Positions 7,559-63,067 of a stretch of DNA of 64,000 bases are shown in pieces. Source of the DNA: Zootoca vivipara (taxonomy: Eukaryota); the NCBI RefSeq assembly GCF_963506605.1, contig NC_083282.1, forward strand, positions 38,750,001 to 38,814,000, read 5' to 3'. Both the position numbers and the translations under genes were made by a program. Under the pieces are notes generated by a model that searched no databases, had not been told where the DNA came from, and was given only the letters and a program-made list of their open reading frames with translations. Each line of letters starts with the position of its first letter. The first letter of the stretch is position 1.

Positions 7559-8298
7559 ATTTTCGAATCTCCACTGTGTCTCATTTCCAAAAGGAAACTG
7601 TTCAGCGGAGGCGGCCCAAGGCCCGCGCCCCCCGCGTGCCTCCGGATAGCGGCCTGAAGCCGCTCAACAGCTGAGAGGCGCAGTGGAGGTGACCCCAGGC
7701 AGCACCGGGGGGCGGCGGGCGGCGGGCAGGCTGGCCAGCGCCCCCTCCATTTTGGCACCCTAGGCAGCTGCCTAGTTCACCTTGATGGATGCACCGGCCC
7801 TGAATGTGGTTTGTACTAGGTTGCATCCCACTCCACTCCAAACTGGACATTCTAAACCTTTTCTCGTAATGGGTAGGCATTATGGGTAGCTGGGATGAAG
7901 CACAATTTGCTCTCCCTGCTGCTAGCCTTTTGAAAGGCATGGTAATAATGTATAGCCTTCTAGGACCTGGAGCTTTTTCCTTTGTTGACAAATGAAGGGC
8001 TGCTTGAGTAGTTCTTGTCTCTGCTTTCTGTGATTCACTGACCAAATGAGAACCCTGAACCAGCAGGTTGGCTGTGGAATGACAAGCGTTTTATTTTGCT
8101 CCTCCCTTTGCAGACTTCATGTGAATCAGCTAAACCAGAAATACAGGTAGAGAAAGAGGTGGAGGATTTCTAAAGGCAAACACCCTGACAGAACAGTAAA
8201 AAAACAAACAAAAACACCACGTCTTGAATGGAAAAATAACAGGGGAAAGTAGCTGTTTGAGAGAGCCTGGAGTGGTTGATACTCTTTCCAACGTGAAA

Positions 8299-20842
<12,544 letters not shown>

Positions 20843-22171: not shown

Positions 22172-22351
22172 TCAGCACCCTCCATTCTGACTCTGCTCTG
22201 AATGCACAGATCCATTCTTCAGGAGTTCTTTAGCGACAGGGCTGCTGGGATATAGCCGGGTAAAGCGGGCAAGTGCAAAGATAGGGAAGATGATTCGGTA
22301 GGCATTGTAATGCAGAGTACCAGATTTGTAGAATGCTCCAGCGATGTCACC
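22172..22351 (-). CDS. LSS: LSS-like exon 22 ([30 protein letters not shown]...QNGGC*)
   Basis: cctcag|GGT; TGA at 22174-22172; candidate minus-strand AATAAA at 21376-21371. Confidence 0.92.
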   Translation of the reverse strand, partial: GDIAGAFYKSGTLHYNAYRIIFPIFALARFTRLYPSSPVAKELLKNGSVHSEQSQNGGC

Positions 22352-28800: not shown

Positions 28801-31800
28801 TTACTGTGCATTATTGGCTCCCTCCTATCGTCTAGTGCAGGCATCCCCAAACCGCGGCCCTCCAGATGTTTTGGCCTACAACTCCCATGATCCCTAGCTA
28901 ACAGGACCAGTGGTCGGGAAAGATGGGAATTGTAGTCCAAAACATCTGGAGGGCCAAAGTTTGGGGATTCCTGGTCTGGAGGCATGCTGTGCCATTGTGA
29001 GCCAGTCACAGTTTGCAGACCACCTTCAAAGCCAGAGCCAATCTGCAAGGATTTGTAAAGAACCACAGGACACAAACAAGGGACTCTGCACAGCACAGCC
29101 TTGGTACCTTGCTATCCTGCACCGTTTATCTTTATTGGGATGCACTGCCACCCACATAATAGCCAAAAAAGAACATGTGTGATGTGAGGAGACCATTGAT
29201 TTCTAGCTAACTTTGTGTACCTGTTGCTCATTTGGGTTCTGAAATATACTCGGAGTCGAGAGTGAGTTTCATGCTCTTTATTCAGCTCATATTCATCAAG
29301 GAGAAGAAGAGAAGACGAATGGCTCTTTTCCCAAAACCATCTGCTTATATACATTATTTACACAATGGGCCTTGCGTGATTGGCTACTTCAGGGCTACAC
29401 CTGTGGGCCAATTATATTGTGGATTGACTTCTGCCTGCAGCCTGATTGGCTGCTCCTACAGGCCAATCAGGTAGCAGATTCACTTCTGCCAGCCGCCTGA
29501 TTGGCTGCTCCAGCAGGCCAATCAGGTTGCGGATTCACTTCCACCTGGAGTTGGATTGGGTAGCTCCTGCTGATTCTGAATCCTATTGTTCTAGGATTCA
29601 GCTCAGTACATAACAGGTTCCATGTTCAGAGCCACATGGACTGTCCGTATCACGTCATCTTTGTTCTGCCTATTCCAGAAACCAACCACCAGCCTGCCTT
29701 AGAACATCTCTCCTATCAGCACCTGCAGTGGACTCTGACAACGTGAACAATTGCCAAGGTCCTATGGCCAAAACAAACTGCCTTCAAACATGTGACTTCA
29801 GTTCATGGTCTCTAGCCCCAAAACTATGAAATAGGCCTTGCTTGTAAAGATGACCAGAATTCACAAAAGATTCCCATTTAAGTTGTTCTGATATCAAGGC
29901 TGTGTTCTTACCATATAACTCCGTGCAGTTCATTATCTCCAGTAGCCTACTCCCTCGTCTGGTTTCATAAGCAGCAAAACCGCCATCAGAATTTCTCATG
30001 CTCAGAATCTGCAAAAAAGTACAAGTGGGATGGGGGAGGGGGAGAGGGTTTAAGAACAGGCATGGTGTTCCTTGTCCTACTTGCAGAGGCACATGACTGG
30101 TCACTCCTGCACAACCCCACAAGCCACTCCTGTGCCCCTTTCACGCTTGCCTTTTTTTACAAACTAAAAAACCCCCCAAATGTTACAGAGACCCTTGATC
30201 ATTTTAGTTGCCCCTTTCTACCCAAGTGCTTTGATTCCTGCTGTTTCAGGCTTTGCCACAAGCACCAAATGCAATTCAGGCGCCATTCCACCCGGCTACA
30301 ATGCTGTGTAAAATCAGAGCCTGTGCTCTTGACAAACCAATCTCTTTATTTTAAGTGGCGCTCAACAAAAGGAGAGTGGCTCTCTGTACATATATGTAGT
30401 CGTGCCAGTTGGCCCTCTCTCACCATATTAGGCCAATGGAGAACTCGGTGGATGGGGAGATTCTGTTGTTCTAGCAAACCCTAGAAAGTGCCCTTGCTCA
30501 TCACGACTATGATGAGGATTCCAGGACAAAATTTGCTAATTTGCACTATTTCTACCAAATGTGATTTATCTCCAAATTACCAGTGTAGGGAAAGAGATTA
30601 ACTCATTATGTATTTGACTTCAAATTGATTACCGTAAGTAACGTGTAAGGATGCAATAGCTGCTTTCTAAAGAGCAAGATCAACAGTCCATCTGTTCTCA
30701 ACCCTAACGCCCAGTGAGCTTTCGATCCAGCTTACTGGGGGAGATTGCTCTCAGTCCCACTACATTGCATCCCTTTACCTGAGCTTCAGGAACTCAAACT
30801 TTAAGACTGATCATCCTTCACAGAGGATAAAATGCTGCCATAGGGACACTTCCACCAATTCTCTTAGCCTACGGCCCCACAAAACTCAGCACTATTACTG
30901 AATGCTAGATGACTTCAGTCTTCCCACAATAGCTTCCTCCTGCCTGCTTCCCATTTTCTCTTCTGGGCTTTCCCCCTTCTCACCACGTTGACAGCATCAA
31001 AGAGGCGCTGAGGTGCCACATGATCTTCTATGAAGGGGCATTTTTCCTCCAGCAGCATCAGTGTCCTCATGGCCTCAGCAGTGCAGTCAGACACTATCCA
31101 GTCATTCTCTCGAGTGCTGAAGGGGAATCCACCCTGGTAATTGAAGTGAATACATTAGGACTCCATTGGCAGCTGCCAGTGTAGAGGCATCTCCTCCCAA
31201 GCAATGCCCAAGAAAGCAATCAGGGAGTTGATGGGTGATCCATATTTCTTCTTCAGGATTCTAGATTAGATGGGCACTGGCCTAATGCAGCAGGCTCTTC
31301 TCGTGTCCTTACATTCTCAGAATTAACACTTAAAAGCTCTCTTTTTGCTGGCTATGTGTCAGACAGACAGGTCACGATTCTGGATGTACCTTGTTCATCT
31401 GGCGATAATATCTCTGGTAGTTAGGTGGGTTATCTACAACCTGAAAAACAGATTAGCAGCATATTAATAAAAGGCGATCAGATTATATTTGTAACCAGTG
31501 GGAAAGCCAGTGTGGCATAACAGTTTGAGTGTTGGACCTCAGAGACCAGGGTGCTAATCCCCACTGCCTCTCACCCTAGACTTCCTCACAGGGTTGTTGT
31601 GTGGATTCATTAAGGAGGAAGAAAACCATGTATGCCACCTTAAGCTCCTTGGAGAAAAAGGTGGGCTATGCAATAACTAAGAAACAAAACAAAACAAATA
31701 AATTAACTCAGTCAGAAATATGGCCTGTAATTTAGAAGACAGAATGTGGCTACAGCCTGATGCAATGGCAGCACATAGGGTTATGTTCAGTGCTAGTGCT

Positions 31801-34800
31801 ACTCAAAGTAGACTCACTGAAATTTATGAACTCAAGTTGGTCATGTTTATTAGCCTGAATGGGTTTGCTCTGAATAGGATTCATACTGGGTACAACCCAT
31901 AGTGCTGGTTGAGGTAAATTGCCGTAGATATACAAGGTTTTACACAGGACTGAAGCCACACTATAAAACCAAATTGATATTACTTGTCAAGGATCACATG
32001 GGCTTCAGATTAAAAACCTATTATTCTGTAGTCCTGCCATGACACATTATTCAGCTGAACGAATCTCATGTGATCAAGAGGCAGCTAAGCAACACTCTGG
32101 CTCTGCCTCCAAGGTCACACAGCATCTCATGACCACAACATCCACACATTAAGCTTTGCCTATGCAGGCATCCAGGTCTAAATGCATGGATATCAGAGGC
32201 AGGGCTGGGGGAAACCATACAACCTTGGAAGCTGTCCTTCAACATCTAGGTCAGGCATCCCAAAACTGTGGCCCTCCAGATGTTTTGGCATACAACTCCT
32301 ATGATCCCTAGCTAACAGGACCACTGCTCGGGGAAGATGAGAATTGTAGTCCAAAACATCTGGAGGGGTGAAGTTTGGGGATGCCTGATCTAGGTCAAGT
32401 AATGGCCCACTGCCTTGGATCCCCTAATAGCTCCTTCTCATGATGAAAGGGGCTCATGTTACTTTGCAAAAAGAGACAAGCGTTTTCCTCCTGATTGTTT
32501 TGCTGAGACAGCTGAAAGCAGTATTGATTCCCTATGTATATTATTCCAATATCATGCTTTACCTGAGAGGCTTTCAAGAATTCATGGGCTTTTTTCAGAC
32601 AGGATGCATAGTCAGGATTGTTCTGAACCCCAGCCTAGAAAAAGAAAGAAGTTATGCTTAAGAATTCTGACCCAGGAAAGTCACAGAGAAAATCTCAGAC
32701 ACTTACACAAAAGCATCACTTTGGACAGCTACAAAAATAAACGCAAGTTCTTGAGGGATAACTTCAGTGTTACACAAGGAATACTCAGTGTGTGAATTTC
32801 TGGATCTCATGTCATAAATTACCTGGAGAACCATGACAGGCATACAAGGTGTTCAGATCTCGTAAGGTGTGTGCTTTGGTTAAACACACACCATCTACAT
32901 GCCAGTTCATTCATCTAATATATATATATGTAAATGGAAATTATTATGGAGAGAACAAAAGTAGAATATTTGACAATATAAAATGGTACCTCCAATAAGC
33001 CTTGAATGGTAAATGATGTATCCCAGGTCTGTGATCCTATGAACTGATATAAAGAAAGGAAGAACAGTTTTGTCCTTTTAGATCAGGGCTGGAGAACCAC
33101 TAGCCTGGGAGCTGAATGCAGTCCTCTCTAACCAGCCCTTGGGATGCTTCCCCAGTCATGGCCACTTCCCAGCCTACAGCCTCCCCCACTGGCCTTGCTC
33201 TGCATCAATCAAGAACACTGGGAGTAAATCAGTAACTAAAGGGCTCCTCCACACTTTCGCTTGGCCCTTGTTTTGATTGTATTGTGTACTGATCAATTCC
33301 CCCCAAGTCCAATAGTTTTTCCTCTTGTTCTCTCAGTTAAGCAGCATGTGTTTTGGGGATTCTTGGCACATCATATAACATCTGAATCAGCATTTTAAAA
33401 AGGTGCCACATGACCTGGTGTTATCTTACATCTTATCTCCTAGCCCTAACCCTGGGGTGAAGCTACACATTATGCAGAAGATCCATGCCTGGATCTCCTG
33501 ATATTTTGATATTCACTTCAAATAAGCTGGTGCTGTCAGGCAGGGAGAAGACAGCTGAGCTTGAGAGTCACCAATGCAATGCAAATTGCAGCCCATAATA
33601 TTTCAAAACATATTGGTTCACACTATTGTACCTTTATTAACATACCATCTTGTCCCATCCTGCAGAGATATAAAAAGAAGAGATTATAGCAGTCACAAGA
33701 CCATGTAGTTACCTATCTGCATTGCATAATAAGAGACCAAAATCTTCCTGATATCTCTCCCATACAACACAACGAGTGAGCCACGGGTGTGCATGAGATC
33801 TGCCTATACAGTACTGCAAATAAGGATATGTTCACATCACTGGCCTAAAACGCAGCAAAGTCATTTTATCCCACTGCTTTGCAAAGCTGCATTTGCACAG
33901 GGTTGTTCACATCAGAGAGGGGGCAGAGATGTTTTTACAGAGTGTGCATGCCCTTTCTGGTTTCCCCACCACTGCAACCCCCTGGAACGCCTAGTGATGA
34001 AGCTGCCATCTGAGCATCTGTGCTCATCTGTGCACATACGACGGTTGTCGCAGGTAAACACACCATTCTGAAGTACGATGTGAATGTGCTTTATGTTTTC
34101 TAGTCTGATTGACCCTTTTTTGAGGAAAGATCAAGGTCTGCAAAACCACACTTATGCAAGACCATATTCAGGACACTACAAAGATGGGTGGAATAAATAT
34201 GCCAGTCTTACCAAAGGTAGTCATAAAGTCTGGAGATATGTTCTTGAAAAGCTGGAGAATTGGCTCCATCAACTTGCTTTCTTATTAGCATATGAAACAC
34301 TTTACAAATCTACAGGACAAAAGATATATCATTCCAGTTAGGAATTTTCCTCTGCTATACCTCCATGCTTAGCACAGTCATCTGTTGCATGGCTATGTCT
34401 CTGCATGTCACCAGCCCAACACAGAAACTCCTTCAATTGGGCAAAACAAGATCGCTACAAGCATAGCTCTACCTTTGGAAGTATACTGGTTTTGGGGGCA
34501 AATCTTCCTCAGGAGAAGGAACATATGCTGCCATCAAAAGTAACTTGTTCCTGATACAATTATTTCTGAAAGACATTCACAAAGGACCTACCGGACTAGA
34601 ATTGGTGGCATTTGAGAATATGTCATCAGCTTTGATTTGCTCATACATTTCTGCAATGGCTTTCTTTCTGAAACTGGTGAAATGGTATCTCTCGTACAAA
34701 TTTAAGGTAGCTGCAGAAGGAATAAGAGACACTATGAACATCGCAATCATGTTAATACGGTTCTATCTTCCTCGTGCGTTTTGGGCTGCAATCCTCCATG

Positions 34801-37800
34801 CAATTACCTGGAAGAAGGCACCATTGAATTCAATGGCACTTGCTTCCAAAAGATACTGTATTTTGCTCAAAATAGAGGCAGGATTTCAGCCCCCAAATTT
34901 CAAAGATGATTTCAGGGGGAAATCTGCAAAAGGAACATGGGTGTGAACAAGGGGTTTACCACAGATGGGTACCAGTGGTTTAGGGTCATTTGTTTTTTTT
35001 CCCTTTCCCTTTGCCCTTCTAAAAGTGAGGAGCTTGTGTCCCAAGCCACCATGACCCCATTGCCCCCATTATAGGGAAATAACCAGACAGGACAAAAAGA
35101 GTAAATGTAAAATGGGTCAAATAGGCCACAAATTTATTGATGTGATGTGAATGTTAGCCATAGGCATTGGGTATATCATTTGAAGTCCAGCCTACCAACT
35201 GGAAGTGTTTCTAGGGTCAGCCCAATACTATGACCTACCCCAAATTGTGGTACCCCCCCCAAAAGGGTCCCTGGTCAATGAGTGCTATGGCCCTAACCCC
35301 CGCCTGGATGTTCAGACAGAAGCAACTCCTTGTGGATCCCTTTAATGGGACACCCTCTTTCATGGAAGGGCTAATACCCATGTGTGGACCCAAGTGACAC
35401 CACTTAATAACAACAACAATAATAATAATAAATTTTTATCTATACCCCGCCCTTCCCGATTCAAAAACCTGGGCTCAGGGCGGCTAACAACAAATTTAAA
35501 ACACTTAATTGTAATACAACATAAAAGCAACATAAAATACAGTATAAAAGCACGAATAACAATAAAATTCAAGTTCAAGAATCAATTTGGGGGAAATCCA
35601 TCCAATAAACATTAGATAGTCACCAGAGATAGCTGGCTAAATTAGACCTATCTGGGCCAGCAAGGAGGCCAGGAGAGAATTAGCTGTGGGGTCCCAGAGC
35701 GGGTAATCTTCATAAAAGAGGGGATGGGGGAAGAGAAGGGACTATGTTTAGGGCACCTTGTCTAGCCCCTCTCCCTTTTCGGGGTAAGCAGAGTGGATCC
35801 TAAAAGGTGCTGCTCAGGCATGGATACAGCTGCCGAGCTGCTCAACTGCCTCATTCCTTGAGTCAGAATGACTGAATCTGTATCCACCGCCCATGTGCCG
35901 GTTCATGACTAGGGGCTTCCAGATTTCACGATTCTGCCCCCGTTACCATTTGCTGATCGCCATGGGACTTTGGGGGTTTGGGTCGGGTTTTTGGAAGACG
36001 CCTGTGCGTGAATTTGTTTTATGTGTGTAGATCAGTGCACACTGACCAACGCACAGTCTTCGCAGTAGGGTTCTGTTCCGAGGGCATGAAGTAGTCCTAT
36101 CTGCTGCAGCCTTCATCCACCTTCACAGCCATTGCAACATGCCACTTGTTATCATCCACCTGTTCTGCTGTTGAGGACTTCTTGGATCATTCTTTGTCTA
36201 GCTCCTTCACTTTGACCTTACTGCCTTGGGTGACCCTGCTGGGAGTATGAGATTCCTGACGGCTCACAAGGGTCATAGGAACATGCAAGCCCACTCACCA
36301 CGACAATGTGATGATCCAGCGAGTGGGACTACCCTGTAGTCTGACAGGCAAAACCCTAGTGATGATCACCATGGGTGGTTCTAAGACTACAAAACCCATA
36401 ATGCCATGGCATGTGTCCATAGCATGGTTCAGGCCTCTTGCTCACAAAGCAATGTTCTTACTTGTATTTGCTACAAAGGTTTGTATTGTGTTTGTTCCAG
36501 CTAACAAGCTGTGATAATATGAAACTTGGAAGATGTATGTTTCCATGGATATGTGTCTGCGTCAAGGACATGCAAAGCATCCATGTCTTATTCCTCAGAC
36601 AATGTGTTTGCCTATAACAACAGAAGTCTCTTCCTCTCTTTCTCTGTGCCAAGTAAACCCTAGGAAACCTACATTGAAGGCCTGAACTCCTGGAATAAGA
36701 CTTGCCAATTCCTACATCACTCACCATATGCGGCATCCAGCATCCAGCTGTGTGCAGCTTGCAAATCGGTTTCGTGAATATTGTTCCTCTGGGCTTGCCA
36801 ATCAATAGTGGAAAAGTCCTCCACATAAATCTCCTAGGAGGAAACCATGAAGTGAAATGACTTTCATAGTAAAGAAGAAGCAGGATACTAGTGTACTTGA
36901 CAAATGCCATTTCATGGCTTTAAAAAAACCAAGAAAATTCATGCTAGTGTGGCAAAATCTGCTCTGTACCCATATAACACTTCTCCCTGTGTTATGGCAT
37001 CAGCTTTCATGGTCCTCTTCATCCATTTTTATACTTATATGAAAAGTGGTATGTCTTAAGAAATAATATTAATTAATTAATTAATTAATTAATTAATTAA
37101 ACACTAGAGGAGGAAGAGGAGGGTACTCCATAGGAGATTAATGGTTCAACAGTTCTTCATTGATTTGTTTTTTAGTAGTTCTGAAGAGGGGAGGAGAAAA
37201 CACCTTTTACCACCCAAAAAGAAAGGGAGAAAGAAATTAAAAGATGCATTAAAAAGGGGGAGTCTGGTATTACTGTGATGGAGGAGGCAACATGGGTGTA
37301 GTCTGTCAGTTTTTAGGAGAAGAGGCAAGGGTCTAAAAGCAATACTCTGTGGAGCATGAAGCACAGAGTCATTAAAATAAATTAAAAGAAAAGCATGGAA
37401 GGTGAGAGACATATGATTTGGGAGGGTGATACCATGGGCACCATCTCCACTCCAAATTCTACCCTCCCAAAGTTGCCCTCCCCTGTGGAATAGGGATGGC
37501 CAAGTGGCATGTTTCCATGCCCCCGCCTCTCTCCAAAATAAATATTCCCATGGCATTTTTAAACACTGTTGCTCTGAGCTTGACTTCTGCCTTAAATGGA
37601 AAATAAGACATCCAATTTAGCCTTCTCCCTGTCAGATACAAGCAAGCAATCTCCCAAGTGCAGATACGAGGGAGTACGAGGGTCCTACTCTGACCGAGGA
37701 TGATGGGATGTTTGGAGAATGCTGCCTTGCCTGTCTTAGACTCTGGATCAATTCATCTTCTTCCATAGTCAGGCGAGAGGCATAGCAGTAGCTCATCACA

Positions 37801-40800
37801 AGGGTGATATGGCGAGCATGACACCAGTATGTTGAAGGATGTGCTGGAATCCATGTAGGGAACAGCCTGTTTCAGAAAGATGGAAGAAACAGGTTCATGG
37901 AAAACAATGTCAGGAATCCTGGATATAGGGGTAAAACTAAGGGCAGGCTATATTGCCCTTCATCCGAGGATCACAGGGCAGTTTATGGTATAACACAATA
38001 AGAAACAAAACAATAATTCATCCTCCACTAGATTTTTTTGTGAAAACTAGTATCTTTTGCAACCTTCTGGTTACTTCTTTCTTAAAACCAGAGCTTTTTT
38101 CTGCGGATACACAGGGGTATGCATACCCCTAAACATTTTGTGAATCTAAGTTTGGCCTCACTGAGGGCAGTATTTCAATATGAGCAATATGAGTAGGAAA
38201 ATGAGAGTACCCCTAAACATTTTTTAGGGGAAAAAAGCACTGTTTAAAACAGTCCTAAAATCATTTCCCAGGCCTATGGGCTGCAGTTTGAGCTCCATTT
38301 GCGGCTTGCAATTTTTGCTCATTAACATGCGCCATATGTCACATCCATGACATGTGTCTACTCACCAATCAGGCAGAGGTATGGCAACTAGCCATACCTC
38401 ACTCTGACTCATGAGTAGATGTTCTTCATCTGAGTAACCTCTACATGAAATCCTGTGAGGAACAGGTTCTGTCACAAATGGACACGAAGTAGTGAAGATT
38501 CATATGAATGTGTCTATTTCCAAGTCATTGCTGTTTCGTGAAGGATCCGTCTACTGTGCAATACTGTTGCCGCAGAGACCTTTCTTTGGCAATTCATGAT
38601 TGGCAGGGTGGGTTGGGGATGAGAAAACTTTAGGACACATACCATAACTCAGGAAACAGTGAATTCATTCCCTCCCAGCTGTACAAATTCATAGTAGCCA
38701 GCCAAACTTTGCCCAGATGAGGGATTCCAAGAGCACCACCTGGAAAGAGAATTATCAAAGTCTTTGTTTCCATAGACTGAAGGGGCAAAGTCAAATAAAC
38801 CTTTAATGAAAACCTAGATATGTTTATAGCCTTGTGTGATTGAAAGCTCAACTTGTTTAGAGTTTAGTGATGCAATGCCTCAGATTTCCACCAGAGTGCT
38901 GTGCCGCAGCCTCCTTTTGATTGGTTGTGGGTACAGGTAGCCAGAGGGAGGTGGTGACAGCACTTGCCGTGGGCATGAGAAAAAAACAGTTAAGGGATTG
39001 GAGTTCTGGCATTTAGCTGCATAGTAGTATAGCTCCTGAGCTGTGTGTTAAATTCACTCTGTAGTCAGAGAAAGAAGTCTCTGAACTTAAGTTTGAGAGA
39101 CAGTGATTAGCGCATTTTAAGAGTATACAGACAAGAGAAAACTGGGAAGCTGAATTGGGAACAGGAGAAGTAGAATTGTGAGAGGACATATTATTTGGAT
39201 TCTCAATTCAGTAAGAAGGGGAGAGATCTTCTTGAAAGAGAAGAATCCCAGACCAGTCAGAGGGGTGAGCTGATCCCCTGGTCTGTTACACTACTAGAGG
39301 AGCCTCACGAGTAAGATTTATAGAAGGTTGGGAAACTGACAGAAAGTACCACCCTGAATTACATCCTTAAGGACTGTAATTCATGGAGATCAGGCTGGTG
39401 TTTTTTTACCAGGTAGATATATGAAAGATAATTTATGAAACATTATTGATGTGATTGAATATCTAGAAGTTAGAAATGATAAGCAAGCAGCTTTGATTTT
39501 TATTGATGCAGAGAAAGCGTTTGATAATATATAATGGACTTATATGAAAAACGTAATTGAAATAATGAATTTTGGACAGGTCTTTGCTAATAGTATTGAG
39601 GAAATTTATTCTGAGCAACAGGCTAAATTAATAGTAAACAATACCGTTACTGAAAAATGTAATATAATAAAGGGAACAAGACAGGGGTGTCCATTGTCGT
39701 CCCTGTTATTTATTCTGGTGTTAGAGCCTTTGTTGAGAAAGATAAGAACAGATGAAGAAGTCAAAGGCATCACAATTGGAACTAGGTCATGCAAACTTAA
39801 GGCATTTGCAGATGATTTAGTATTAATGGTAGAGAATCCTTTGGAATCGGTACCAAAAGTATTTGAGAAATTGAATGAATTTGGCCAAGTGGCAGGGTTA
39901 AAGTTAAATAAAGGAAAAACAAAAATGCTGGTTAAAAATATGACAGAACAAAATAAAAATGAATTTGAACAAATAACAGAATTAAAGATAGAAAAGGTGG
40001 AATATTTAGGGGTCTGGTTAACATCAAAAATTATAAACTTTTTTCAAGATAATTATGTAAAAGTATGGAATGATATCAAAAGAAATATGGAAATATGGGG
40101 TAGAATGAACTTATTTTTTTATGGGAAGAATCTCAACAATAAAGATGAATGTGCTGCCAAGAATGTTATTTTTATTTCAATCAATTCCGGTAGCCTATGG
40201 AAAAGAACACTTCAAACACTGGCAAAGAGATATATCTAAGTTTGCATAGCAGGGGAAGAAACCAAGGATTGAATTTAAATTACTGACAGATGTAAAAGAA
40301 AGAGGGGGACTTGCTCTGCCAGACTTAAAATTATATTATGAAGTATCCTGTATTTGTTGGCTTTTATAGAATGGATGAGTTTAGAAAATCCAGGCATATG
40401 AGATATGGAAGGATATGATAATAGATTTGGGTGGCATGCTTATTTGTAGTATGAAAAGGTGAAAATACATAAAGGTTTTTTGAATCATATTGTAAGAAAA
40501 TCATTATATTATACATGGGGGAAGTATAAGAATCTATTGGAAAATAAGACCCTGTGGTGGATAGCACCACTTGAAGTATTAAAATTAAATATGGAAAGAG
40601 GGTGGTTAACTTACAGAGAGTTGTTGATAGAGGAGGAAAACCAGTTGAAACTGAAGAAGTATGAAAATATAAAGCATTTGTTTTCTGACTGGCTCCAATA
40701 TCATCAACTAAATGATATATTTAAAAGGGATAAAAAGTAGGTTTTGGGAAAGAAATCTCAAGACTACAAAAAGATCTGTTGGAGAGTAATGAAAAGGTTC

Positions 40801-43800
40801 TATCGGAAGTATATAAACTGCTGTGGGAGTGGGAAACAAAAGATGAAGAAGTGAAATCGGTAATGATACATTGGGCAAAAGATGTGGGCATAATATACAA
40901 TTTGAGGCATGGGAAAAGCTATGGAAGGTGATTTAAAGTTTACGCCATGCTGTACGTTAAAGGAAAACTATATGAAAATGAGGTATAGATGGTATCTAAT
41001 TCCGGTAAAACATGCAAAAATGTACAAAAAAAGTCGAGTATGTGTTGGAGATGTAAAGATAATGAGGGCACATTTTTCCATATGTGGTGGACCTGCAAAT
41101 TAGCAAAAGCGTATTGGGAAATGATATATAATGAATTAAATAAAATGTTTAAAATAACTTTTATTTAAAAAACCAGAGGCTTTTACCGTGTTTCCCCGAA
41201 AATAAGCCATAGTGATAGGCAGTTTAACCTTGTACCGTACTTAATTAAAAAAAAGAAGACATTCCCTGAAAATAAGCCACTGTGGGTTTTTTTTAAAGGA
41301 AGAATAAATATAAGACGGTGTCTTATTTTTGGAGAAACACGGGTAGGTATAACAGGAGAAGATATCCCAAAGGAGAAAAAGGTCTTATTTATGTATGCAA
41401 CGACAGCATTGAGAATGTTATATGCCCAGGGATGAAAGGAAGAAAGAAAGAAAGAAAGAACCCCATCGAAAGAAGAATGAATAATGAAATTAATGGACTA
41501 TGCCGAAATGGCAAAAATGACTGGGAAGATCAGACACCAAGAGGACAAAAGATTTTAAAATGAATGCACTAATTTTGTAGAATATCTGAAGGAGCATTGT
41601 AAACACTTAAAAACATTAGCAGGCTTAGAATAGTGCTGGTGATATAATTAGGGTAAAATTTGTAATAAGGGAAATGAATAAATTAGATAAAGATATAAAG
41701 ATGCAGAAAAGATAAGAGATAATGATAGGAAACCGGGGAGGAGGGTGGGGGGAAGTCTGGGGGTTGAGAACCTCCAAAAGATAATGTTTTGTTGCGTTGA
41801 TATGAATGTAAAATGTAAGCAACAAATTCNNNNNNNNNNNNNNNNNNNNNNNNNNNNNNNNNNNNNNNNNNNNNNNNNNNNNNNNNNNNNNNNNNNNNNN
41901 NNNNNNNNNNNNNNNNNNNNNNNNNNNNNNNNNNNNNNNNNNNNNNNNNNNNNNNNNNNNACCAAAGTATTAAGACCTAAGCTGTAGCACCTAGGCTGAA
42001 AAAATTGAAGTGAAAATAAGCTGTGTTTTCTACCTTGTTTAGACACCTGTAACAACAACTGAATTTAATATATTTGTATATGTTAACTGCCCTGTCACAC
42101 TGTCATTGCCTGGCTCGGCCACACTCCACACACTGGAGGGCAAGTCTAGTAGCAGATGCAGTTTTCAGCTACGTTCAGTGTAGAGTTTCTGAACAGGTTG
42201 GAGCCAAAGGGTCCCCCCTTCATTTCTATATTGGACAGAGTGAATGCCCTGATCATCCTCAAACCATATGCATGTGTTTCTCAGACTGTATCCACGCAGA
42301 AGTAACTACTTCACCTCCCACTGTGCCAATAAACCCTATGTGTGAACGCTACTGCAATAAAAAGGGTATAACTCACCTCATTCTTTGTATTTATGAAATA
42401 ACTAGCTGACCCGGCCACCCGTTGCTGTGGTTCTTTCCTGTGATCCCCCCCACCCTGTCATGATTCATGACGTATCCTGCCCCTCCTCCCTCCACCCCGG
42501 CTCATCCCTGTGTTTCGGTAGGATACCCTTCCCTCTGTTGTCCCTGGGGAGTGTTGGCCTCTCCCCCCTGTATCTCCATACCTTGGCCCCCACCCTCGAA
42601 AAGGAACTGTTTGGTTCTGGGTTCTATTTCCCAGCATGCACTTTTGTCTGAACCCTCTGTTGTTCCTGGGGAGTGTTGGCCCCTACCCCTGGTATCTTCC
42701 TACATTGGCCCCCATCCTTGGAGAAGGAGCTGTCAGTTTCTGGGTTCCATTTCCCAGTATTTACTTTTGTCTGAGCCCTCTGTTGTCCCCTCCCCCCTGT
42801 ATCTCCATACATTGGCCCCTGCACACGCATCATGAACATTTCTATATGTTTAGATTAAGGATCGGGGGTGATGATGTGCCCTGGGACCCAGAGAACTACA
42901 TAAAGAATCCCAACCCGGGGAGGGGGGGTCAAATAGCGAAGCCCCACAGCCCTGTAGCAACAGACAGGCCCAGACAGAAGGAAGAGGGTCATATGGGGCA
43001 CTTGGCGCGGGCCTCCAAATCTAAAGGGGGCCTCGGTCAGCATATTCTCAATCAGTAAAATGGAAGAAGTAACTAAGGGGTTAAAAACAGGGACACATTA
43101 TCTTATCTATCTGGGCTGGGCCTCTGTCTGGCCCTGCAAGGGCCTGGCAACAGAAGGCGCGTTCAGAAGTCACCGGGTTGTTCAGTTCCATAAAAAAACC
43201 CAGGAAGTGGCAAGGGGAAGGTAGGGAATTGTAAATGGGGTGGGAGGTGTGTACTGCAAATATCTGAGGACTTAAACTGGGGAGAGAAAGTGAATGGTTG
43301 TTGTTGTTTTTTTAAAAAAAGACACAGAGGCTTACAATCAGTTGTTTCTCCTAAAATAAGACATACCCATAAAATAAGTCATATTTATTTTTGTCTTGTG
43401 GATTTTTTGGGGGTAGTGGTGCTAAATTGTAAAGTAAAAACCCCTTGCAGTGTAGGGGCCTACATAAATCAAAGGTCGTGCTGCGGTCTGTGGCAAACCC
43501 CTCCTCCGGCAGGCCCCGACCTCCACTTGGCAATGTTGGTTCTTTGGTGGGGTTTTTTTTGGGTGGGGGTAGTGTTGCTAAATGGTAAAGTAAAACCCCT
43601 TGCAGTGTAGGGGCCTACATAAATCAAAGGCCGTGCTGCGGCCTGTGGCAAACCCCTCCCCTCCAGGCAGGCCCCCGACCTCCACTTGGCAATGTTGGTT
43701 CTTTGGTGGGGTTTTTTTGGGGTGGGGGTAGTGTTGCTAAATGGTAAAGTAAAACCCCTTGCAGTGTAGGGGCCTACATAAATCAAAGGCTGTGCTGCGG

Positions 43801-46800
43801 TCTGTGGCAACCCCCCCCCCCAGGCAGGCCCCAACCTCCACTTGGCAATGTTGGTTCTTTGGTGGGGATTTTTTTTGGGGGGGGGGTAGTGGTGCTAAAT
43901 GGTAAAGTAAAGCCCCAAGTGTGTTGCTGTGGGTTATCCCCCTCCCCGGGCCTAGTGGAGGCCTGTCAGCCTGTCAGGGGCCTAAAACAAAGGCCTAGAT
44001 AAAATGGCTGGCTTGGTGTGTTTCAGTTGCTTGGTTGATGATGATGTCATTCGGTTTGTGGGTGTGGCTTAGATTTCTCAGGAAGGGAGGGGGTGGAGGA
44101 GGTTACAACGCCACTTGAGGGCGCTGTTTGAATTGGTGGGAAAGCATTTCTGTACCTGCGCAGGTGTGTGATTTGAGGGATTTTTGCCTCCAACAACGCT
44201 CTAGGAGTGGCCTGGATCGTTGTGTCCAAATTTCAGGACGATCGGTCAAGCGGTTACGGAGAAAAGTGGAACCCCGGATTTCATGATTTTTACATTTTTA
44301 TATATATAGATATTTTATCACTGCATTTGTGCTTTACGGAGTGGTACAAAACGGCCCATGTCCCGACCCTCCCAAGAGTTCCCAATACAGTGGTACCTTG
44401 GGTTAAGAACTTAAATCGTTCTGGAGGTCCGTTCTTAACCTGAAACTGTTCTTAACCTGAGGTACCACTTTAGCTAATGGGGCCGCTGCCGCACAATTTC
44501 TGTTCTCATCCTGAAGCAAAGTTCTTAACCCAAGGTACTATTTCTGGGTTAGCAGAGTCTGTAACCTGAAGCGTCTGTAACCTGAGGTAACACTGTATAA
44601 TTGTTAGAGGAGGAAAAATCAGGAGGGAAGATATGACCAGCATCTTCTGTTTGATCATAGAAATGGTGTCCATTTGCCAATCTATGNNNNNNNNNNNNNN
44701 NNNNNNNNNNNNNNNNNNNNNNNNNNNNNNNNNNNNNNNNNNNNNNNNNNNNNNNNNNNNNNNNNNNNNNNNNNNNNNNNNNNNNNNNNNNNNNNNNNNN
44801 NNNNNNNNNNNNNNNNNNGCTCCCAAATAACTGTACAACATCAGGACTGCCAAGTTTTGCCTGGGCACTACGCTCGAGCAAAATGGATTGATCCAGCCCT
44901 GCCAGAGAGTTCTGCCTTACCTTTTTTGTGGAGATTTATCCGAGCCCGCACTACATTTGGATGGTCAGGCCCAAGTCCAAGGATTCGCATAGCTATATAG
45001 CTGAAGGTTGTGCCTAATACTGTTGACTGTTCTGTAAGATGGCTACCATAAAGAGAGATCAAAGAGCCATTAGAAAATAGACCAGAGTGTTTGGATGTCT
45101 AGAAACCTGTTTGAATTGTTTAGTTTCCATTAACTTAAATTCAAAAACTTCTCTGAGAATTTGTCAGAATACTCCAACAATACCCAGTCAGCTAGCCATT
45201 AGCCAGGCTACCACAGAATACCTACTTTTGTTTTCTATTTCCTTTTTTTAAAGTAATGCCTTAATGGAGGACATGTAGTGCTTTGAAATGTTTCTTTTCA
45301 GGAGACAGCATGGGCTTGAGAGCAGCTCATACAGCCGGAATACCAGATGAAATTCCATTCCAAATAAATAAGAGCTGATCTTGGTTAATGAGAATGTAGA
45401 TTCTGAATTCAGATTCAAAGCTGAGTCAAACCCCGAACTATTTTGTGGTTTGCTATTGGTTTGACAGGATACATTTGGATGGAGGCAACCTGGCTTCCCC
45501 AGACCATTTATCAGTTGTAATACTTCCTACAGGTGGTACTTTTTAAAGGCAAGAGGGATGTCAGAAATCATGTCTTCATTATTGTTGCCTCTCTCCACCC
45601 CTCATGCCACAATTCTATTTTTCTCTGCCACAGCTGGGCAGCTTCAGTACATGCTGAGTCCAGCTTGCATTTTGGTCATCTACCCTGCTGCCCTGTCCGC
45701 ATGGTGAGTATTGCTCACAGTCAAAAGACAGCAGAATGCAGAAGTGATTTAAAGTAGCCTTCATGGGGGAATTGCATCATGGACCAGCCCAAGACAAAGA
45801 TATGCAGAATTAGAGCATCTCTTCCCAGGCCACTCTAAAGAAGCTCACACCCTCCTTGGACTACTCACAAACTCCAGCCACCATCTGGAAGCTGTTGTGA
45901 GAAGATGTAACGCAGGAGCTCTCTCTCGTACTCTTCTGGCAGTGAGATCTTGGCAGCATAGCATGACATCAAAAAACCTGTTTGATTTTTTTTAAAAAAG
46001 ATAACAATGTATAATACTTCACAATCTCAGTTTTGGCTTGATTTGTTTGGATACCGCCTGTTTGGATATCGAAATGTAACTTGTGCTTTTGTACCCCTGG
46101 TAGGTAAAAGGTCAAACATAACAAGATTTAATTGGCTTTTCCAATTGCCAAAGCCATGTTAAAAACTAGGTTATGGGACATAGAGCGCCAGGAACTGACT
46201 TTAGCTGCAAGAAAAACATGTTCCCCTCTTTATTTCCAACTCTCTTGGGCGCAGGAATCTAATTCCAGCTATTTACAATTTCCGTTTAACCCACAAGAAA
46301 GAAGGGCTTTCTCACTAGCTAGGTTCAGTGCTAACCCCTCTAACCTCCTCTGGGGTAGGTTCGCAGGGACTGCTGAAGGAGACAGGATCTGCCCATGAGA
46401 CGCCCATCTGGTTGAAACTTTAGCTCATATAGTCCTTAAATGTATGACGATATCCGCCAGCAATACCTGGACCAACTATGTGTTCCAAAATGGAAACCGG
46501 AGATAGAGGTTATAGGGGGAGAGACCAGGAGCGTACCAAGACTGTAGCTAAGTTCCTCTATTTGATCTTTTGCCGCCAAAGTACACTACAGGATCCTGCC
46601 CCCATTGGAGACCCACAGAGGTGAAATAGATTGCTGGCCTTCTCCCCCTTTTGGCAAGTGACTGTACTGATAAGTTGGCGACGTGATTGTACAGGACTAT
46701 GTATTTTAAATGTTTGAAAATTATGCCAATAAAGGTTTTGATTGATTGATTGACAAGATTTAATTATCTAGCAAGTTTAGGCAAAAGATAATCACTTCTG

Positions 46801-49800
46801 CCCCCTCACTAGAAGGTGCATAATTTCATTCTGGACTATTCAATGTTGGATGCTGCTTACAGTAATTGCCTGGAGCTCTATGCACTTCCCCTGTGTGGTG
46901 AACCACTGAACAACAGGCAGCAGGATTCTCAGTGAACTATCTTCAAATTGCTGGTCCAGGTGGGGATTCAGAGGGGTATTACCCAATCCTATCAGGTGAT
47001 GCCAGAGGGCAAACCTAGGACCTTCTGCATGCAGGGACTGAACTGAATTCAGCTTCTCTCACTTCATTTCAAAGTTTGGTTCACTTTTTTGCATCAGTTT
47101 GTGATTGATTTATTTTTAAGTCTTCATGAAAATTCATCATCTCAATATACACATTTTTGCAAAGCTATTATTATTATTGTTGTTGTTGCTGCTGCTGCTG
47201 TTGTTACTCTAGTATATGGCATTCTACACATTATGTAACTGGAGAAGTGCACTACAAAATTCAGTGAATAGCAAATGTCAATGGATGCCTGTGCTTCAGT
47301 TCTCATACTGTTTCCGAAAGCACTAATAAAGCCTTTACTGCAAACTAAATCAAATTTCTCTCACATCTCTATCTCTACGCAAACCACATTTATTTATTAA
47401 TATTTATTTATATACCACTTCAGTGTAGTAAAGCTTCTAAGTGGTTTACAAGAAATATTAAAATTTTCTGTAAAACAGTTAAAAATAATACAGATTTATT
47501 TTTTTTAAACCATCTGGTCTACCACATCCCCATACAGCTATGTGATGCCAACAATGAGCAATATCCTGTGCAATGGAGTCAATGGATTACCCCCCTGCTT
47601 GGAATGCACTGAAGTGGTATTCTGTTTTGTGAGAGAGGCTAGACTTAGTTTTCCAAAACAGGTGGGAATTGTTTAGTTTAAAATATTCTGAGAATGAAGA
47701 CTATTCCAGAAAGTTGACCAAAGTCAGTCTGAACTGGCTTGAATAAGATAAACACCTCTGCTTACCCAAGAAGAAGAAAACCTATTTAGCTGAATTACAG
47801 TTAAATTCACAGGTGAGATCTCTTTGTTCCTTTCATAGCTAAAGGCTTACAGGTCCATTATTCTAGATTATTCTGACTTCATTGGAAAGCGCGATAGCTT
47901 TTGCTTTGTTGCAGAAAATCCCAAGTTGGATCCTGGGCATAGAGCTGGGGAAACCAAAGAGGGTTGCCAGCAGTTCAGTGTTCAGATAGATGTGCCAGTG
48001 GGATAAGGCAGCTTCCTATGTTATTATGATGAACAGCTTTGTAGAGGCAAAAGAAAGACAACTAATTTAAGCAGTTTCAGGGGTTTCTGAAAATGTTCAC
48101 CTATTTGTGCCTAGCCTATCTGGTAAAAAAAAGAAAAGAAACAGATTTATAGAAAATATACAGGGAGGCCAGTTAATGTATTTGTGGTAAGTCTGTTAGC
48201 GTCCCTGTACCTGGTCCAAGAGCGACGACACCAGAGCACTCCATAGGCCAATGGCCATCTTCCGCTTGCAGGCCAGAGAAGAATTTAATCGCTTTCTGGA
48301 CTGCTTCCTGGGCCGTATTGGCTTTGGGCAAGTCTGGAAAGAACTTACTCTGTAAAACAAAATGGGGGAAGTAAGAGAAATGTACAGAAATTAAAAAGGC
48401 TGGCTACAGTACAAAGTACCGGTATGCATAGTGTTAACTGTCCTGCTACATATAATGCAACTGTTTGGTCATTTTAAAATAAATATAGCCTAGAGACATC
48501 TCTGAGCTCTTAGATCAGTGATCCACAAGGGACCAGAAGATCATGTAGCCCAACTCCCTTTCCACAAGTAAGAACCCAACACTGACTCTGGCTTGCCGAT
48601 GAACTCACTCAGCACAAGCTCAGATAACAATCACAGAGCAGCTACCTTGTAGAAAGTGATATCAAAGTTATGTATTCCAGTATTTCCAGTAGATCGGCAT
48701 ATTCATCTTATTCAGGGTTGTCTGTCTTTCAAGTATAAGATAAGCCTGACCAAGTGGCAGGCAGTTGGACTAGATGACCCTCACGATCCCTTCTACAATC
48801 TATGATTCAATGAAAGCAATAACCAAGCTCCTGTGTTCCTGAGGTGTCAGAAAATGAGAAGCCAAAAGAAAAATGACCCAGCCCTTGGGAATCTGCAGCA
48901 AGCCAAGCCCAAGCCAGCAGTCCTCATGCCCTCTACTCCTTTTGTAGACTTTCAGTGTTGTACCATCTGTTATCATTAAGCCACTTACAATGTCCAGCCC
49001 TAAAGTGTAAGCCTCTAGTGCGTTCTGTTCACGGGCACATTCTTCATTGTCTGCCACGTAGTACCATTTATGCCGCCCTTCCACGGAGCTGAATCGCCAG
49101 CGAGTAAGATCAGTTTTGGGTTCTATTTCATGTGCACCTTTTCTTCTGCGCAGACATCTACCAAAGAACACAGAGGGGGGAGTTTGAAACATGCAGGCAG
49201 ATTTTCAGTTTGTCATCCTGCCACAGGAAATTAATCTGAAACCAATTTTGTGCTCATTCCTGCCAAATGTGAGGGACAGACTTTTCTATTGATTTCAGTG
49301 GGTCTATTCATGACTAATTTGTCCACTGATTTCAGTGAGTCTACTCTGAATATGGCATATTCATACACCACCCATAGATCCTTTGCTTTTTCTAACTAGC
49401 TCATTATGGAAACACTTCCTATCGCTTATCCATCGGCTGCTTCCCAAGAATGGCTCCTCTTCTTTGTGTGCAGGTAAGCCTACCTGACCCTACCTGGCCA
49501 ATCCCCCTGGCACGCCTACCTCTGGCTGGATTGGTCAGCTTACTGAGTGGGCGGCGACTCCAGCCTCAGGTAGCCAGTGCCAGCCTCCAAACTTCTAGAA
49601 CTGCCCTAGGGATCCCAGGGGGGGCTGCACGCGACTGCGCAAAATGCGCCTCCCCTTTATGTTGGATAAGCGGTCATTCTCTCCAACCATATTTTTGTCC
49701 CAGTTGTTCAGAGCACAAAGAGGGATGGTTTATAAGTTTCTTTTATATCCTGCTTCATTCCAATGACAGAACTCATTTTAGGGTTCTTAAGTATGGAAGT

Positions 49801-54197: not shown

Positions 54198-54705
54198 TAA
54201 TAAGAAAACTTTATCAGAATTGGTTCTACCCTGATGTACTACTGTTCAGATAAACTGAAGACTACAGATAGACAAAACACCATGTTGCATTTGCACCAGC
54301 GAAGCCAGATATCTTCTGCAATAAAATATATCTCTCCCATATTGCTCTCTATAGCCATGGCAGGCACTATACCTCTCCAACAGTTTGACTTTACCCCCAA
54401 TGGCACACTCTTCCATCATCTTTCAAGACAGGTGGATGCCTTTTGATAACTTTAATCACTGTGCTCCACTGCACAATCCTGCCTCTTCAAATCTTTACAG
54501 TAGACTTAGCCTTTGATGAATTGAATTGTCACACTCCTACCCCTTTTTGTTCATGCATGACAAACGTCTAAAAGCAAGGAAAACAAGAATTTCGTGTCCA
54601 AAGACCAGAACAGTTCTGTGAAGAATTTGGAAAGCCAGGAGTTTTGTTGTTGGTCCTCATTTATCCAAAGCTATTCGTCATTCACTTGGGACATAGTAAT
54701 TTCAT

Positions 54706-55189
54706 GTTGTTGTTTAGTCGTTTAGTCGTGTCCGACTCTTCGTGACCCCATGGACCATAGCACGCCAGGCACTCCTGTCTTGCACTGCCTCCCGTAGTTT
54801 GGTCAAACTCATGTTCGTAGCTTCGAGAACACTGTCCAACCATCTTGTCCTCTGTCGTCCCCTTCTCCTAGTGCCCTCAATCTTTCCCAACATCAGGGTC
54901 TTTTCCAAGGATTCTTCTCTTCTCATGAGGTGGCCAAAGTATTGGAGCCTCAGCTTCACGATCTGTCCTTCCAGGGAGCACTCAGGGCTGATTTCCTTAA
55001 GAATTGATAGGTTTGATCTTCTAGCAGTCCATGGGACTCTCAAGAGTCTCCTCCAGCACCATAATTCAAAAGCATCAATTCTTCGGCGATCAGCCTTCTT
55101 TATGGTCCAGCTCTCACTTCCATACATCACTACTGGGAAAACCATAGCTTTAACTATACGGACCTTTGTCGGCAAGGTGATGTCTCTGC
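54706..55189 (-). mobile_element. BovB (RTE) LINE, 5'-truncated
   Basis: Intact 153-aa C-terminal frame; 12-bp TSD tagtaatttcat (54694-54705 and 55190-55201). Confidence 0.92.
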
Positions 55190-56061
55190 TAGTAATTTCA
55201 TACTATGTTATATAAGGCGGGATTTATTAGGAATATACATGCCTATTGCTCATTGGTTCATACTCCAAATCTTCAGGGGCTATTAATTACAGTATGTCAG
55301 TAATTACATTAATTATGCCACAGACATTATTTCAAAATATCTTGCTATACTCATAAATAACATATTATATATATAACATATTATACTACATATATAACGT
55401 AGTAACAAACAAAAAATACCCCAACAGACACCACAGTTTAAAAACCATTGTTTGCTTAAGTACCCAAAGGTTAACCAGCGCAAATTAACCTGAGCCTTGC
55501 CTTTGGGAAGGGGAATGACTGGTGAAGGGAGAAGCAATCAGGAAGAGAGATACCCATGGCACACTTTCAAAATTCAAAAGTGATTACGAGCCCAAAAATG
55601 TTGGCAACCCTTGATGTAAAATGAAGCTCATTGGTACAAAAACAACAATAGCCCTAATGACTGCACATAACTGAATTTGCCACAATTACCTTGGGATAGT
55701 CTGAAAATGCCCACTCAGTGAAGGTCAATTTTTCTACCCTCCACTCCCTTTCCCCACCCCCATGTTGTTGCCCTGAGGAAACCACCCAGTGCTTAAGGGA
55801 GGAAGAAGCAGAAGGAACTAGTAAAATTTCCCTATATTACCAAAACTCTACCCTACCGCTACCAGGCTTCCTCAACTTGAAAAAAAAAAACCTCACTGCT
55901 ATTATGCCTGATCAGATAACGAAAGAACAAACCTGAAATTTATGGCTGATAAGGTTTTGAAAAATGTATACTGTATTGTGCAAGTAACAGTGAAGCAAGC
56001 TTTGGAGAAGAATCACCACCGTGAAGAACAGTGACAGACTTCAGTAGGAAAAGGTTTAGAA

Positions 56062-57418: not shown

Positions 57419-63067
<5,649 letters not shown>

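Follow-up and report, generated by a model that had tools for sequence, protein, structure and literature searches.

An intact, divergent lanosterol synthase-like gene with a one-residue-shorter loop in Zootoca vivipara and other squamates

The DNA analysed here (hereafter the window) is a stretch of 64,000 nucleotides from Zootoca vivipara (NCBI RefSeq assembly GCF_963506605.1, contig NC_083282.1, positions 38,750,001 to 38,814,000 of the forward strand), and all coordinates given below are counted from its first letter. At 22172-49192, on the minus strand, the window carries a lanosterol synthase (LSS)-like paralogue with 21 coding exons and a coding sequence of 2268 nt, which specifies a protein of 755 aa. 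The exon map was obtained from motif scans, from tblastn searches with canonical LSS proteins and from a reading of the splice sites, and a local check of frame and splicing revealed no internal stop across the 755 codons; the introns number 20, with 19 being of the GT-AG type and one of the GC-AG type. The spliced window model was the input to frame checking, alignment and tree building, and an orthologue from Podarcis lilfordi (P0348) stands in for it in comparisons of fold and with structures in the PDB. Two runs of N, at 41830-41960 and 44687-44818, both lie in intron 4, where no coding exon seems to be hidden by them given that the protein alignment runs through this intron without interruption.

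By its sequence, the paralogue belongs to the oxidosqualene cyclase (OSC) / terpene cyclase-mutase family (class II triterpene cyclases). The DCTAE motif with the protonating aspartate (D455 of the human enzyme) and Cys456 is present in exon 14, five QW motifs (Q..G.W) can be found in the translated exons, and exon 19 alone matches Pfam family PF13243 (E 6e-13), with both PF13243 and PF13249, the Pfam domains of squalene-hopene cyclases (N- and C-terminal), being found in the orthologue P0348. The AlphaFold model of this orthologue, which is 90% identical to the window protein, could be superimposed on the human enzyme (1W6K) with template modelling (TM) scores of 0.94/0.97 and a root-mean-square deviation of 1.9 A; its mean predicted local distance difference test (pLDDT) score is 89.4, with values of 84-90 around the loop discussed below. 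In the predicted structure, the scaffold of the orthologue is intact and the double alpha-barrel fold of human OSC is matched.

The proteins closest to that of the window are all from squamates: identity amounts to 90% for the 'lanosterol synthase-like' protein of Podarcis lilfordi (P0348), 82% for the LSS-like protein of Rhineura floridana (P0349), 75% for that of Candoia aspera (P0314) and 64% for a partial one (702 aa) of Pogona vitticeps (P0356). For the canonical LSS of Zootoca itself it is 59%, for that of Saimiri 58%, and against a set of 120 canonical vertebrate LSS sequences the identity of the window protein stays within 55-58%. The LSS-like sequences were gathered by a profile search, in which the Candoia protein was found, and then by a search with that protein. 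The same clade takes in partial models of Naja, Ophiophagus, Thamnophis and Podarcis muralis; full-length orthologues are available from Lacertidae, Amphisbaenia and Serpentes and a partial one from Agamidae. In a single-exon search of protein representatives the nearest relative was a partial 'lanosterol synthase-like' protein of Crotalus adamanteus, and the gene already bears this label in several squamates. No gecko or Anolis LSS-like protein was present among the best 120 matches, which is at most a hint of absence.

In a maximum-likelihood tree of 40 proteins, the nine LSS-like rows included form one clade with 100% support in the Shimodaira-Hasegawa-like approximate likelihood ratio test (SH-aLRT), on a stem of 0.62 changes per site, and the canonical squamate LSS sequences, including that of the lacertid Zootoca, form a clade of their own inside the amniotes, with Zootoca, Elgaria and Anolis standing apart from the LSS-like rows. 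An unconstrained search attaches the long LSS-like stem near the base of the tetrapods; a tree in which LSS-like and canonical squamate LSS were forced together was slightly better and was not rejected (approximately unbiased test, p-AU 0.54), and the tree data are therefore compatible with a gene that was duplicated within squamates and then changed fast. The paralogue has kept the intron-exon layout of LSS, with the same order of coding exons, and since the introns are retained it originated by DNA duplication and not by retrocopying. Evolution within the LSS-like clade is approximately 1.6 times faster than that of canonical LSS, with a path of 0.42 between the window protein and Candoia vs 0.26 between the canonical enzymes of Zootoca and Protobothrops. 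As placed by these data, the window gene groups with vertebrate LSS, outside the plant OSC radiation, and any likeness to plant enzymes is convergent.

The most conspicuous feature of the paralogue lies in two short exons, numbered 11 and 12 in the original prediction and here identified, from the exon map, as coding exons 10 and 11 of 21. Coding exon 10 (28 nt, 33632-33659, minus strand) reads, between ..tctctgcag and gtacaata, G ATG GGA CAA GAT GGT ATG TTA ATA AAG, encoding (W)MGQDGMLIK, with its last codon, AAG (K), at the position of canonical Q379, and is conserved in the orthologues as DGML[IM]K or EGMMMK. It is followed by a phase 0 intron of 588 nt (33044-33631, minus strand; donor gtacaa, acceptor tttctttatatcag) and then by coding exon 11, the loop exon (54 nt, 32990-33043, minus strand), which reads, between the acceptor ..cctttctttatatcag and the donor gtaccatt, TTC ATA GGA TCA CAG ACC TGG GAT ACA TCA TTT ACC ATT CAA GGC TTA TTG GAG. 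The stop-free stretch containing exon 11 matches residues 382-399 of human OSC (1W6K/1W6J) in a phmmer search against the PDB, and in the same type of alignment the window loop has one residue fewer than the human one, the gap being placed at G380, with Phe (33041-33043) and Ile (33038-33040) replacing T381 and N382 and with W387 retained. The window thus reads M-L-I-K-F-I-G-S-Q where LSS reads M-K-M-Q-G-T-N-G-S-Q with Thr381, i.e., the loop is one residue shorter and Thr381 is lost. The length of 57 nt taken for the canonical exon follows from its 19 canonical residues and not from canonical LSS genomic DNA.

As had been predicted, these exons are joined with a 54-nt loop exon that leaves the protein one residue short, which is borne out by the window read, by phmmer and by the match across species, and no AG lies three bases upstream of the exon 11 acceptor by which the length could be restored. 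The latter claim agrees with an enumeration of all GT/GC donors and AG acceptors in the vicinity of the exon 10-11 junction, in which no usable splice pair restoring the codon was found, the sole pairing that adds 3 nt crossing two stop codons; the remaining in-frame pairings were ruled out, as they either delete GSQ or add junk residues. A good pyrimidine tract precedes the acceptor of exon 11, and no other AG lies between the two. The missing codon is the first of exon 11, and a slide of the acceptor by 3 nt may account for its loss.

The corresponding loops of the orthologues read DGMLIKVMGSQTWD in Podarcis lilfordi, DGMLMKVMGSQTWD in Rhineura floridana and EGMMMKVMGSQTWD in Candoia aspera. 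The spacing from DG (EG in Candoia) to WD, in the pattern [DE]G..GSQxWD, is 14 residues in the window and in these three independently annotated orthologues, vs 15 residues in 164 other OSC sequences, a set that extends from Capsaspora to mammals, with fungal and protist sequences and cycloartenol-type GYNGSQ forms among them. Because three independently annotated orthologues match it, the short loop is no chance feature, and from the spacing shared by the orthologues and not found elsewhere it follows that the deletion is ancestral to the squamate paralogue clade, and that it dates back, as far as these sequences reach, at least to the ancestor which lacertids, amphisbaenians and snakes share. 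It is no peculiarity of one genome or of 'the' OSC; according to the tree and the orthologue loops, it was already present in the ancestor of a divergent LSS-like paralogue of squamates. Over positions 377-382, K-M-Q-G-T-N has been turned into [LIM]-[IM]-K-(gap)-[VF]-[MI], which is shorter and hydrophobic, and within it the orthologues read K-VM-GSQ and the window K-F-I, the V-M to F-I step being a later change in the window lineage that took one base for each residue. Taken across species, the 54-nt exon and the one-residue-shorter loop are shown to be genuine inherited features of the squamate LSS duplicate.

The models from Naja and Ophiophagus, which omit the loop exon, and that from Pogona, which does not contain the region, are uninformative on loop length. 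Several models (P0351, P0353 (Naja, Ophiophagus), P0354, P0355 and P0357 (Podarcis muralis)) skip the 54-nt exon or small exons nearby, resulting in junctions such as ..EGMIMK/AGVYNDPEY, and short exons of the LSS-like gene are easily missed by automatic annotation. Elsewhere among the OSC sequences, residues of the loop have changed at unchanged length, namely to MQSLVGSQ, MQSTSGSQ and MSGQVGSQ (P0360, a 'lanosterol synthase-like' protein of the medaka Oryzias latipes, P0231 of Mauremys mutica, and P0066); the medaka protein may represent another vertebrate LSS duplicate.

Changes in the substrate pocket, whose columns were numbered on a 732-aa primate LSS (the numbering of the loop being that of the human enzyme), are not confined to the loop. 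Residues W230, H232, W387, F444, V453, D455, C456, Y503, C533, W581, F696, Y704 and Y707 are kept in the LSS-like proteins, and the following are changed throughout the clade: D97E, Y98C, G99S/A, P101V/I, F103x, W192L (Y in Pogona), C233A/T/I, V236I/T and Y237x; K377x, Q379K, the gap at G380, T381V/F, N382M/I and C449N; and F521Y, I524C (E in Thamnophis, Y in Pogona), N697Y/L and I702L/V. D97E, Y98C, C449N and F521Y are found in 9/9 LSS-like rows and W192L in 8/9, the remaining one being Pogona with Tyr. In the window, the Tyr98 region lies in coding exon 2 (48211-48349, minus strand), where Tyr98 is replaced by Cys (codon 48236-48238) and D97 by Glu, so that the sequence reads MECSGV, canonical LSS having HW[AT]GDYGGPLFLLPG. 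In coding exon 6 (37731-37866, minus strand), W230 and His232 are kept, C233 has become Ala and Y237 Thr, and in coding exon 14 (30984-31133, minus strand), F444, V453, D455 and C456 are kept, with C449 changed to Asn and G450 to Asp. In the last coding exon (22175-22351, minus strand), F696, Y704 and Y707 are kept and N697, I702 and S703 have become Tyr, Leu and His, respectively. Exon 6 also provides the donor of the gene's one GC-AG intron, at 37729-37730 (CAG/gcaagg).

Out of 412 sites conserved in canonical LSS (identical in at least 28 of 31 sequences), 120 (29%) are changed in the window protein, and 69 sites conserved by the same threshold differ across the whole LSS-like clade; this fixation of new states throughout the clade argues for selection on the new state, as judged from the alignment. 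Identity as the lanosterol synthase of the sterol pathway (the LSS/ERG7 orthologue) was considered and is ruled out by the identity of only approximately 58%, the separate clade, the short loop and the loss of Tyr98. On alignment and tree, the gene is shown to be a divergent, intact squamate duplicate of LSS ('LSS-like'), separate from the LSS of the sterol pathway. With human OSC/LSS (1W6K) it nevertheless shares the family, the fold (as predicted for the orthologue), the order of coding exons, DCTAE, C533, W387, F444, W581, F696, H232, Y503, Y704 and Y707, and it differs in all that has been described above, i.e., in overall identity (approximately 58%), in its separate clade on a long stem, in a loop shorter by one residue with F/I for T381/N382, and in the substitutions Y98C, W192L, C233A, Y237T, F521Y, I524C, N697Y and I702L.

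The length of the shortened loop is that of plant enzymes which make other triterpenes. In phmmer alignments, the orthologue P0348 has a single gap in the loop against human OSC (dgmlik.vmgsq / DGMKMQgTNGSQ) and none against the plant enzyme TwOSC1 (8J5Z), which we take to be a friedelin synthase (DGMLIKVMGSQTWD / DGMKVQSFGSQLWD). The canonical sterol-type OSCs in our sequence set read MQG[T/Y]NGSQ, and in a tabulation of 20-odd plant enzymes, beta-amyrin, lupeol and mixed amyrin synthases read MQSF-GSQ, with two residues (Ser-Phe), vs the three (Gly-Tyr-Asn) of the MQGYNGSQ of cycloartenol synthases (PMC4346913); the motif given for a lupeol synthase is ..DGMKMQSFGCQMWD (PMC13046990). The motifs quoted in the original prediction were therefore right, and its proposal that the loop has the length seen in plant dammarenyl-type synthases is upheld by both the gap-free TwOSC1 alignment and the published table.

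Likeness to the plant dammarenyl-type OSCs extends from loop length to Glu97 and the absence of Tyr98, the motif in this region being HW[PA][AM]ECSGV in the LSS-like proteins, HWPAE[IS]AGP in plants (HWPAE[IS]AGPLFFLPP in beta-amyrin and lupeol synthases; PMC13046990), HWPAENGGV in TwOSC1 and HW[AT]GDYGGP in canonical LSS. Val101, His528, Leu702 and His703 are also shared with TwOSC1, and the C-terminal stretch, canonically C-A-I-S-Y, has become G-T-L-H-Y in the LSS-like proteins, compared with C-M-L-H-Y (..NCMLHY) in TwOSC1 and, around residues 702-703, TLHY compared with MLHY or TLNY in plants. On the other hand, His232 is kept in the window (YWCHAR), where TwOSC1 has Tyr (WCYCR), as do plant beta-amyrin and lupeol synthases, in which Tyr replaces His in MWCYCR/MLCYCR (PMC4346913); the W192L, C233A, Y237T, F521Y and I524C changes have no counterpart in TwOSC1; and at approximately 31% identity common descent is no closer than that of the OSC family. 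The convergence on a non-sterol loop that had been proposed can thus be retained in part: loop length, Glu97 without Tyr98, and L702-H703 speak for it, whereas the residues in the loop are not those of plants and the His232/Tyr503 pair is of the sterol type.

Precedents for altered products exist among both engineered and natural relatives. Substitutions of the residue equivalent to T381 (yeast ERG7 T384, Arabidopsis CAS1 Y410) alter which deprotonation product is formed (lanosterol, parkeol or a related sterol), and they concern the same loop, in a residue aligned with human T381; they are, however, single substitutions at full loop length, whereas the squamate loop has been shortened naturally and fixed in a clade. 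In sea cucumbers, animal LSS duplicates have diverged from a highly conserved ancestor to make products other than lanosterol, and within 5 A of lanosterol only one residue sets the parkeol and lanostadienol synthases apart from LSS, namely F444, which is changed to Q or L (PMC9236903). Those paralogues keep the loop and alter F444, whereas the squamate one keeps F444 and alters loop length and many pocket residues, and therefore any change of product in squamates would have come about by a route other than that of the sea cucumbers.

Our favoured reading, in which we place about even confidence, is that the protein is an active oxidosqualene cyclase with a product other than, or beyond, lanosterol. 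The duplicate has retained what is needed to start and carry the cyclisation, comprising the acid (D455/C456/C533), the aromatics W387, F444, W581 and F696 and the paired H232 and Y503. A burst of change, followed by fixation of the new state, has affected those regions of the pocket to which control over substrate folding and over termination is ascribed, i.e., loop 377-382, the Tyr98 motif, three channel-constriction residues and residues 697-703. According to the favoured reading, the shortened apolar loop would take away the Thr381 hydroxyl and Asn382 beside the deprotonation site, and together with the loss of Tyr98, which Thoma et al. reportedly found in 2004 to enforce the B-ring boat, this could relax the constraint that forces the sterol-type fold; loss of both the T381 equivalent and Tyr98, as in plant non-sterol cyclases, should alter folding or termination. 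It is possible, if unlikely, that the squamate OSC no longer folds its substrate in the sterol way and makes an endogenous non-sterol triterpenoid through a dammarenyl-type or other non-protosteryl cation, in which case the shortened apolar 377-382 loop, the loss of Tyr98 with D97E, and L702-H703 would have arisen independently of plants and would act together.

A number of results weigh against the favoured reading. Yeast Tyr99 mutants still yield some lanosterol, and the loop residues of the LSS-like proteins (K-V-M or K-F-I) are unlike the Q-S-F of plant OSCs. The His232/Tyr503 deprotonation pair and Phe444, whose roles have been described (PMC9236903), are all retained, which is the sterol-type state. 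Changes are not enriched in the pocket, where 8 of 22 sites (36%) are altered vs 112 of 390 other conserved sites (Fisher p 0.47), with these 22 sites being a list compiled by ourselves; the idea that the pocket was specifically targeted was dropped, since changes are no denser there than in the background, and the alignment suggests remodelling that is protein-wide rather than aimed at the pocket. The orthologue proteins are automatic annotations, which may share a common modelling habit, and a literature search found no paper joining lanosterol synthase with squamates or treating the LSS-like gene. Finally, three raw-read RNA runs carrying the same species label (approximately 1.1 billion bases each) gave zero reads on the ten exons situated in 29850-34750, by which the exon 10-11 junction is neither confirmed nor refuted, the tissues of these runs not being stated; because RNA gave no exon reads, support for this junction rests mainly on conservation across species.

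The only part of 29850-34750 with RNA read cover is a repeat at approximately 32241-32390, in the intron between coding exons 12 and 13. The reads reach high depth there, nearly all of them are 95-99% alike and most continue into unlike sequence, from which it follows that they come from other copies of a dispersed element and not from the cyclase gene. Lanosterol, squalene and terpene cyclase are not mentioned in the supplements of a sand lizard femoral-gland proteome.

Among the alternatives to an altered product, the one that fares best, though we find it doubtful, is that the paralogue is still a lanosterol synthase serving as a tissue- or stage-specific isozyme, with the loop and the other replacements being tolerated or compensating. 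Such an enzyme would be expected to look as this one does in its protonation, cation-stabilising and deprotonation residues (D455, C456, C533, W387, F444, W581, F696, H232 and Y503), all of which are kept, and in a predicted fold nearly superimposable on that of human OSC; the product change in sea cucumbers was moreover achieved via F444 alone (PMC9236903), a residue unchanged in the squamate paralogue. Squamates, including a lacertid, do however already have a canonical LSS, and the loop, Tyr98, W192, C233, Y237, F521 and I524, which are near-invariant in the canonical LSS sampled from Capsaspora to mammals, have all been replaced and then conserved within the clade, at the end of a stem of 0.62 changes per site that is hard to reconcile with an unaltered function.

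A slim chance is left for relaxed constraint, under which the paralogue would be catalytically dead, decaying or retained for some non-catalytic purpose, with the loop deletion being just one harmless loss among many. The protein-wide spread of the divergence without enrichment in the pocket, the faster evolution of the clade (0.42 for the window-Candoia path vs 0.26 for Zootoca-Protobothrops), the lack of RNA reads on exons in three runs, and the fragmentary state or low-quality flag of several database models of the gene would all be in keeping with it; a decaying gene would nonetheless hardly be expected to have a frame of 755 codons open over 21 exons with every splice site intact, full-length orthologues in Lacertidae, Amphisbaenia and Serpentes and a partial one (702 aa) in Agamidae, retained DCTAE and five QW motifs, and derived residues that are themselves conserved in the clade. 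It is very improbable that the exon model is an artefact and that real transcripts gain a loop of normal length from another site or an unrecognised micro-exon, given that no stop-free donor/acceptor pairing adds 3 nt, that three other genomes agree on the length with flanking residues conserved on both sides and that the acceptor is the first AG beyond a good pyrimidine tract, even though no RNA read crosses the junction, the upstream exon has just 28 nt and the supporting orthologue proteins are computational models.

As regards the surroundings of the gene, the cyclase is flanked by a direct segmental duplication (9000-19198 and 57419-63067, 94-97% identity), with 4.6 kb of additional sequence (11741-16371) interrupting the first copy; the two copies are offset by approximately 48.4 kb, which suggests a tandem unit that could hold a second cyclase copy past the end of the window. 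Open stretches on the plus strand at 8200-9117, 17837-18196, 20312-20839 and 61707-62066 give weak tetratricopeptide repeat (TPR) matches (Pfam TPR_1/TPR_8, E about 0.004-0.007) and a faint likeness to IFIT5 and TTC37 in a PDB search, those at 17837-18196 and 61707-62066 being near-identical copies, and they probably belong to a TPR gene that adjoins, and is partly duplicated around, the cyclase gene. Two near-identical BovB/RTE-like stretches, on the minus strand at 13860-14570 and 54717-55202, are 96.5% alike over 13848-14333 / 54705-55190, the BovB label being a reading of the translation by eye. A reverse-transcriptase fragment lies in intron 4 at 39535-40236 on the plus strand (Pfam RVT_1, E 7.5e-18), and a 165-aa open stretch at the end of the window (63183-63677, minus strand), which has no Pfam match, was grouped with the remains of retroelements.

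Vertebrates are credited with a single oxidosqualene cyclase, whose one product is lanosterol. On the present evidence, lizards and snakes have a second, old and intact one, in which the catalytic core has been kept and near-invariant pocket residues have been changed, with the one-residue shortening of the loop as the clearest structural mark of this remodelling, repeating what occurred in the evolution of plant non-sterol triterpene synthases. According to a 2026 review, 348 OSCs have been characterised, the sources of the animal-derived ones being limited to 7 animal and 5 sea cucumber species (PMC13657253). If the product of the squamate enzyme differs from lanosterol, the gene would represent a new branch of vertebrate lipid metabolism, a natural experiment on the part played by loop length and Tyr98 in steering cyclisation, and a lead for odd triterpenoids in the skin or gland secretions of squamates; were it to be a non-sterol triterpenoid, e.g., a skin, gland or egg lipid, this would be the first vertebrate OSC known without a lanosterol product. 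If, on the contrary, the product is still lanosterol, then the loop and Tyr98 would tolerate change far better than one would expect from their conservation.

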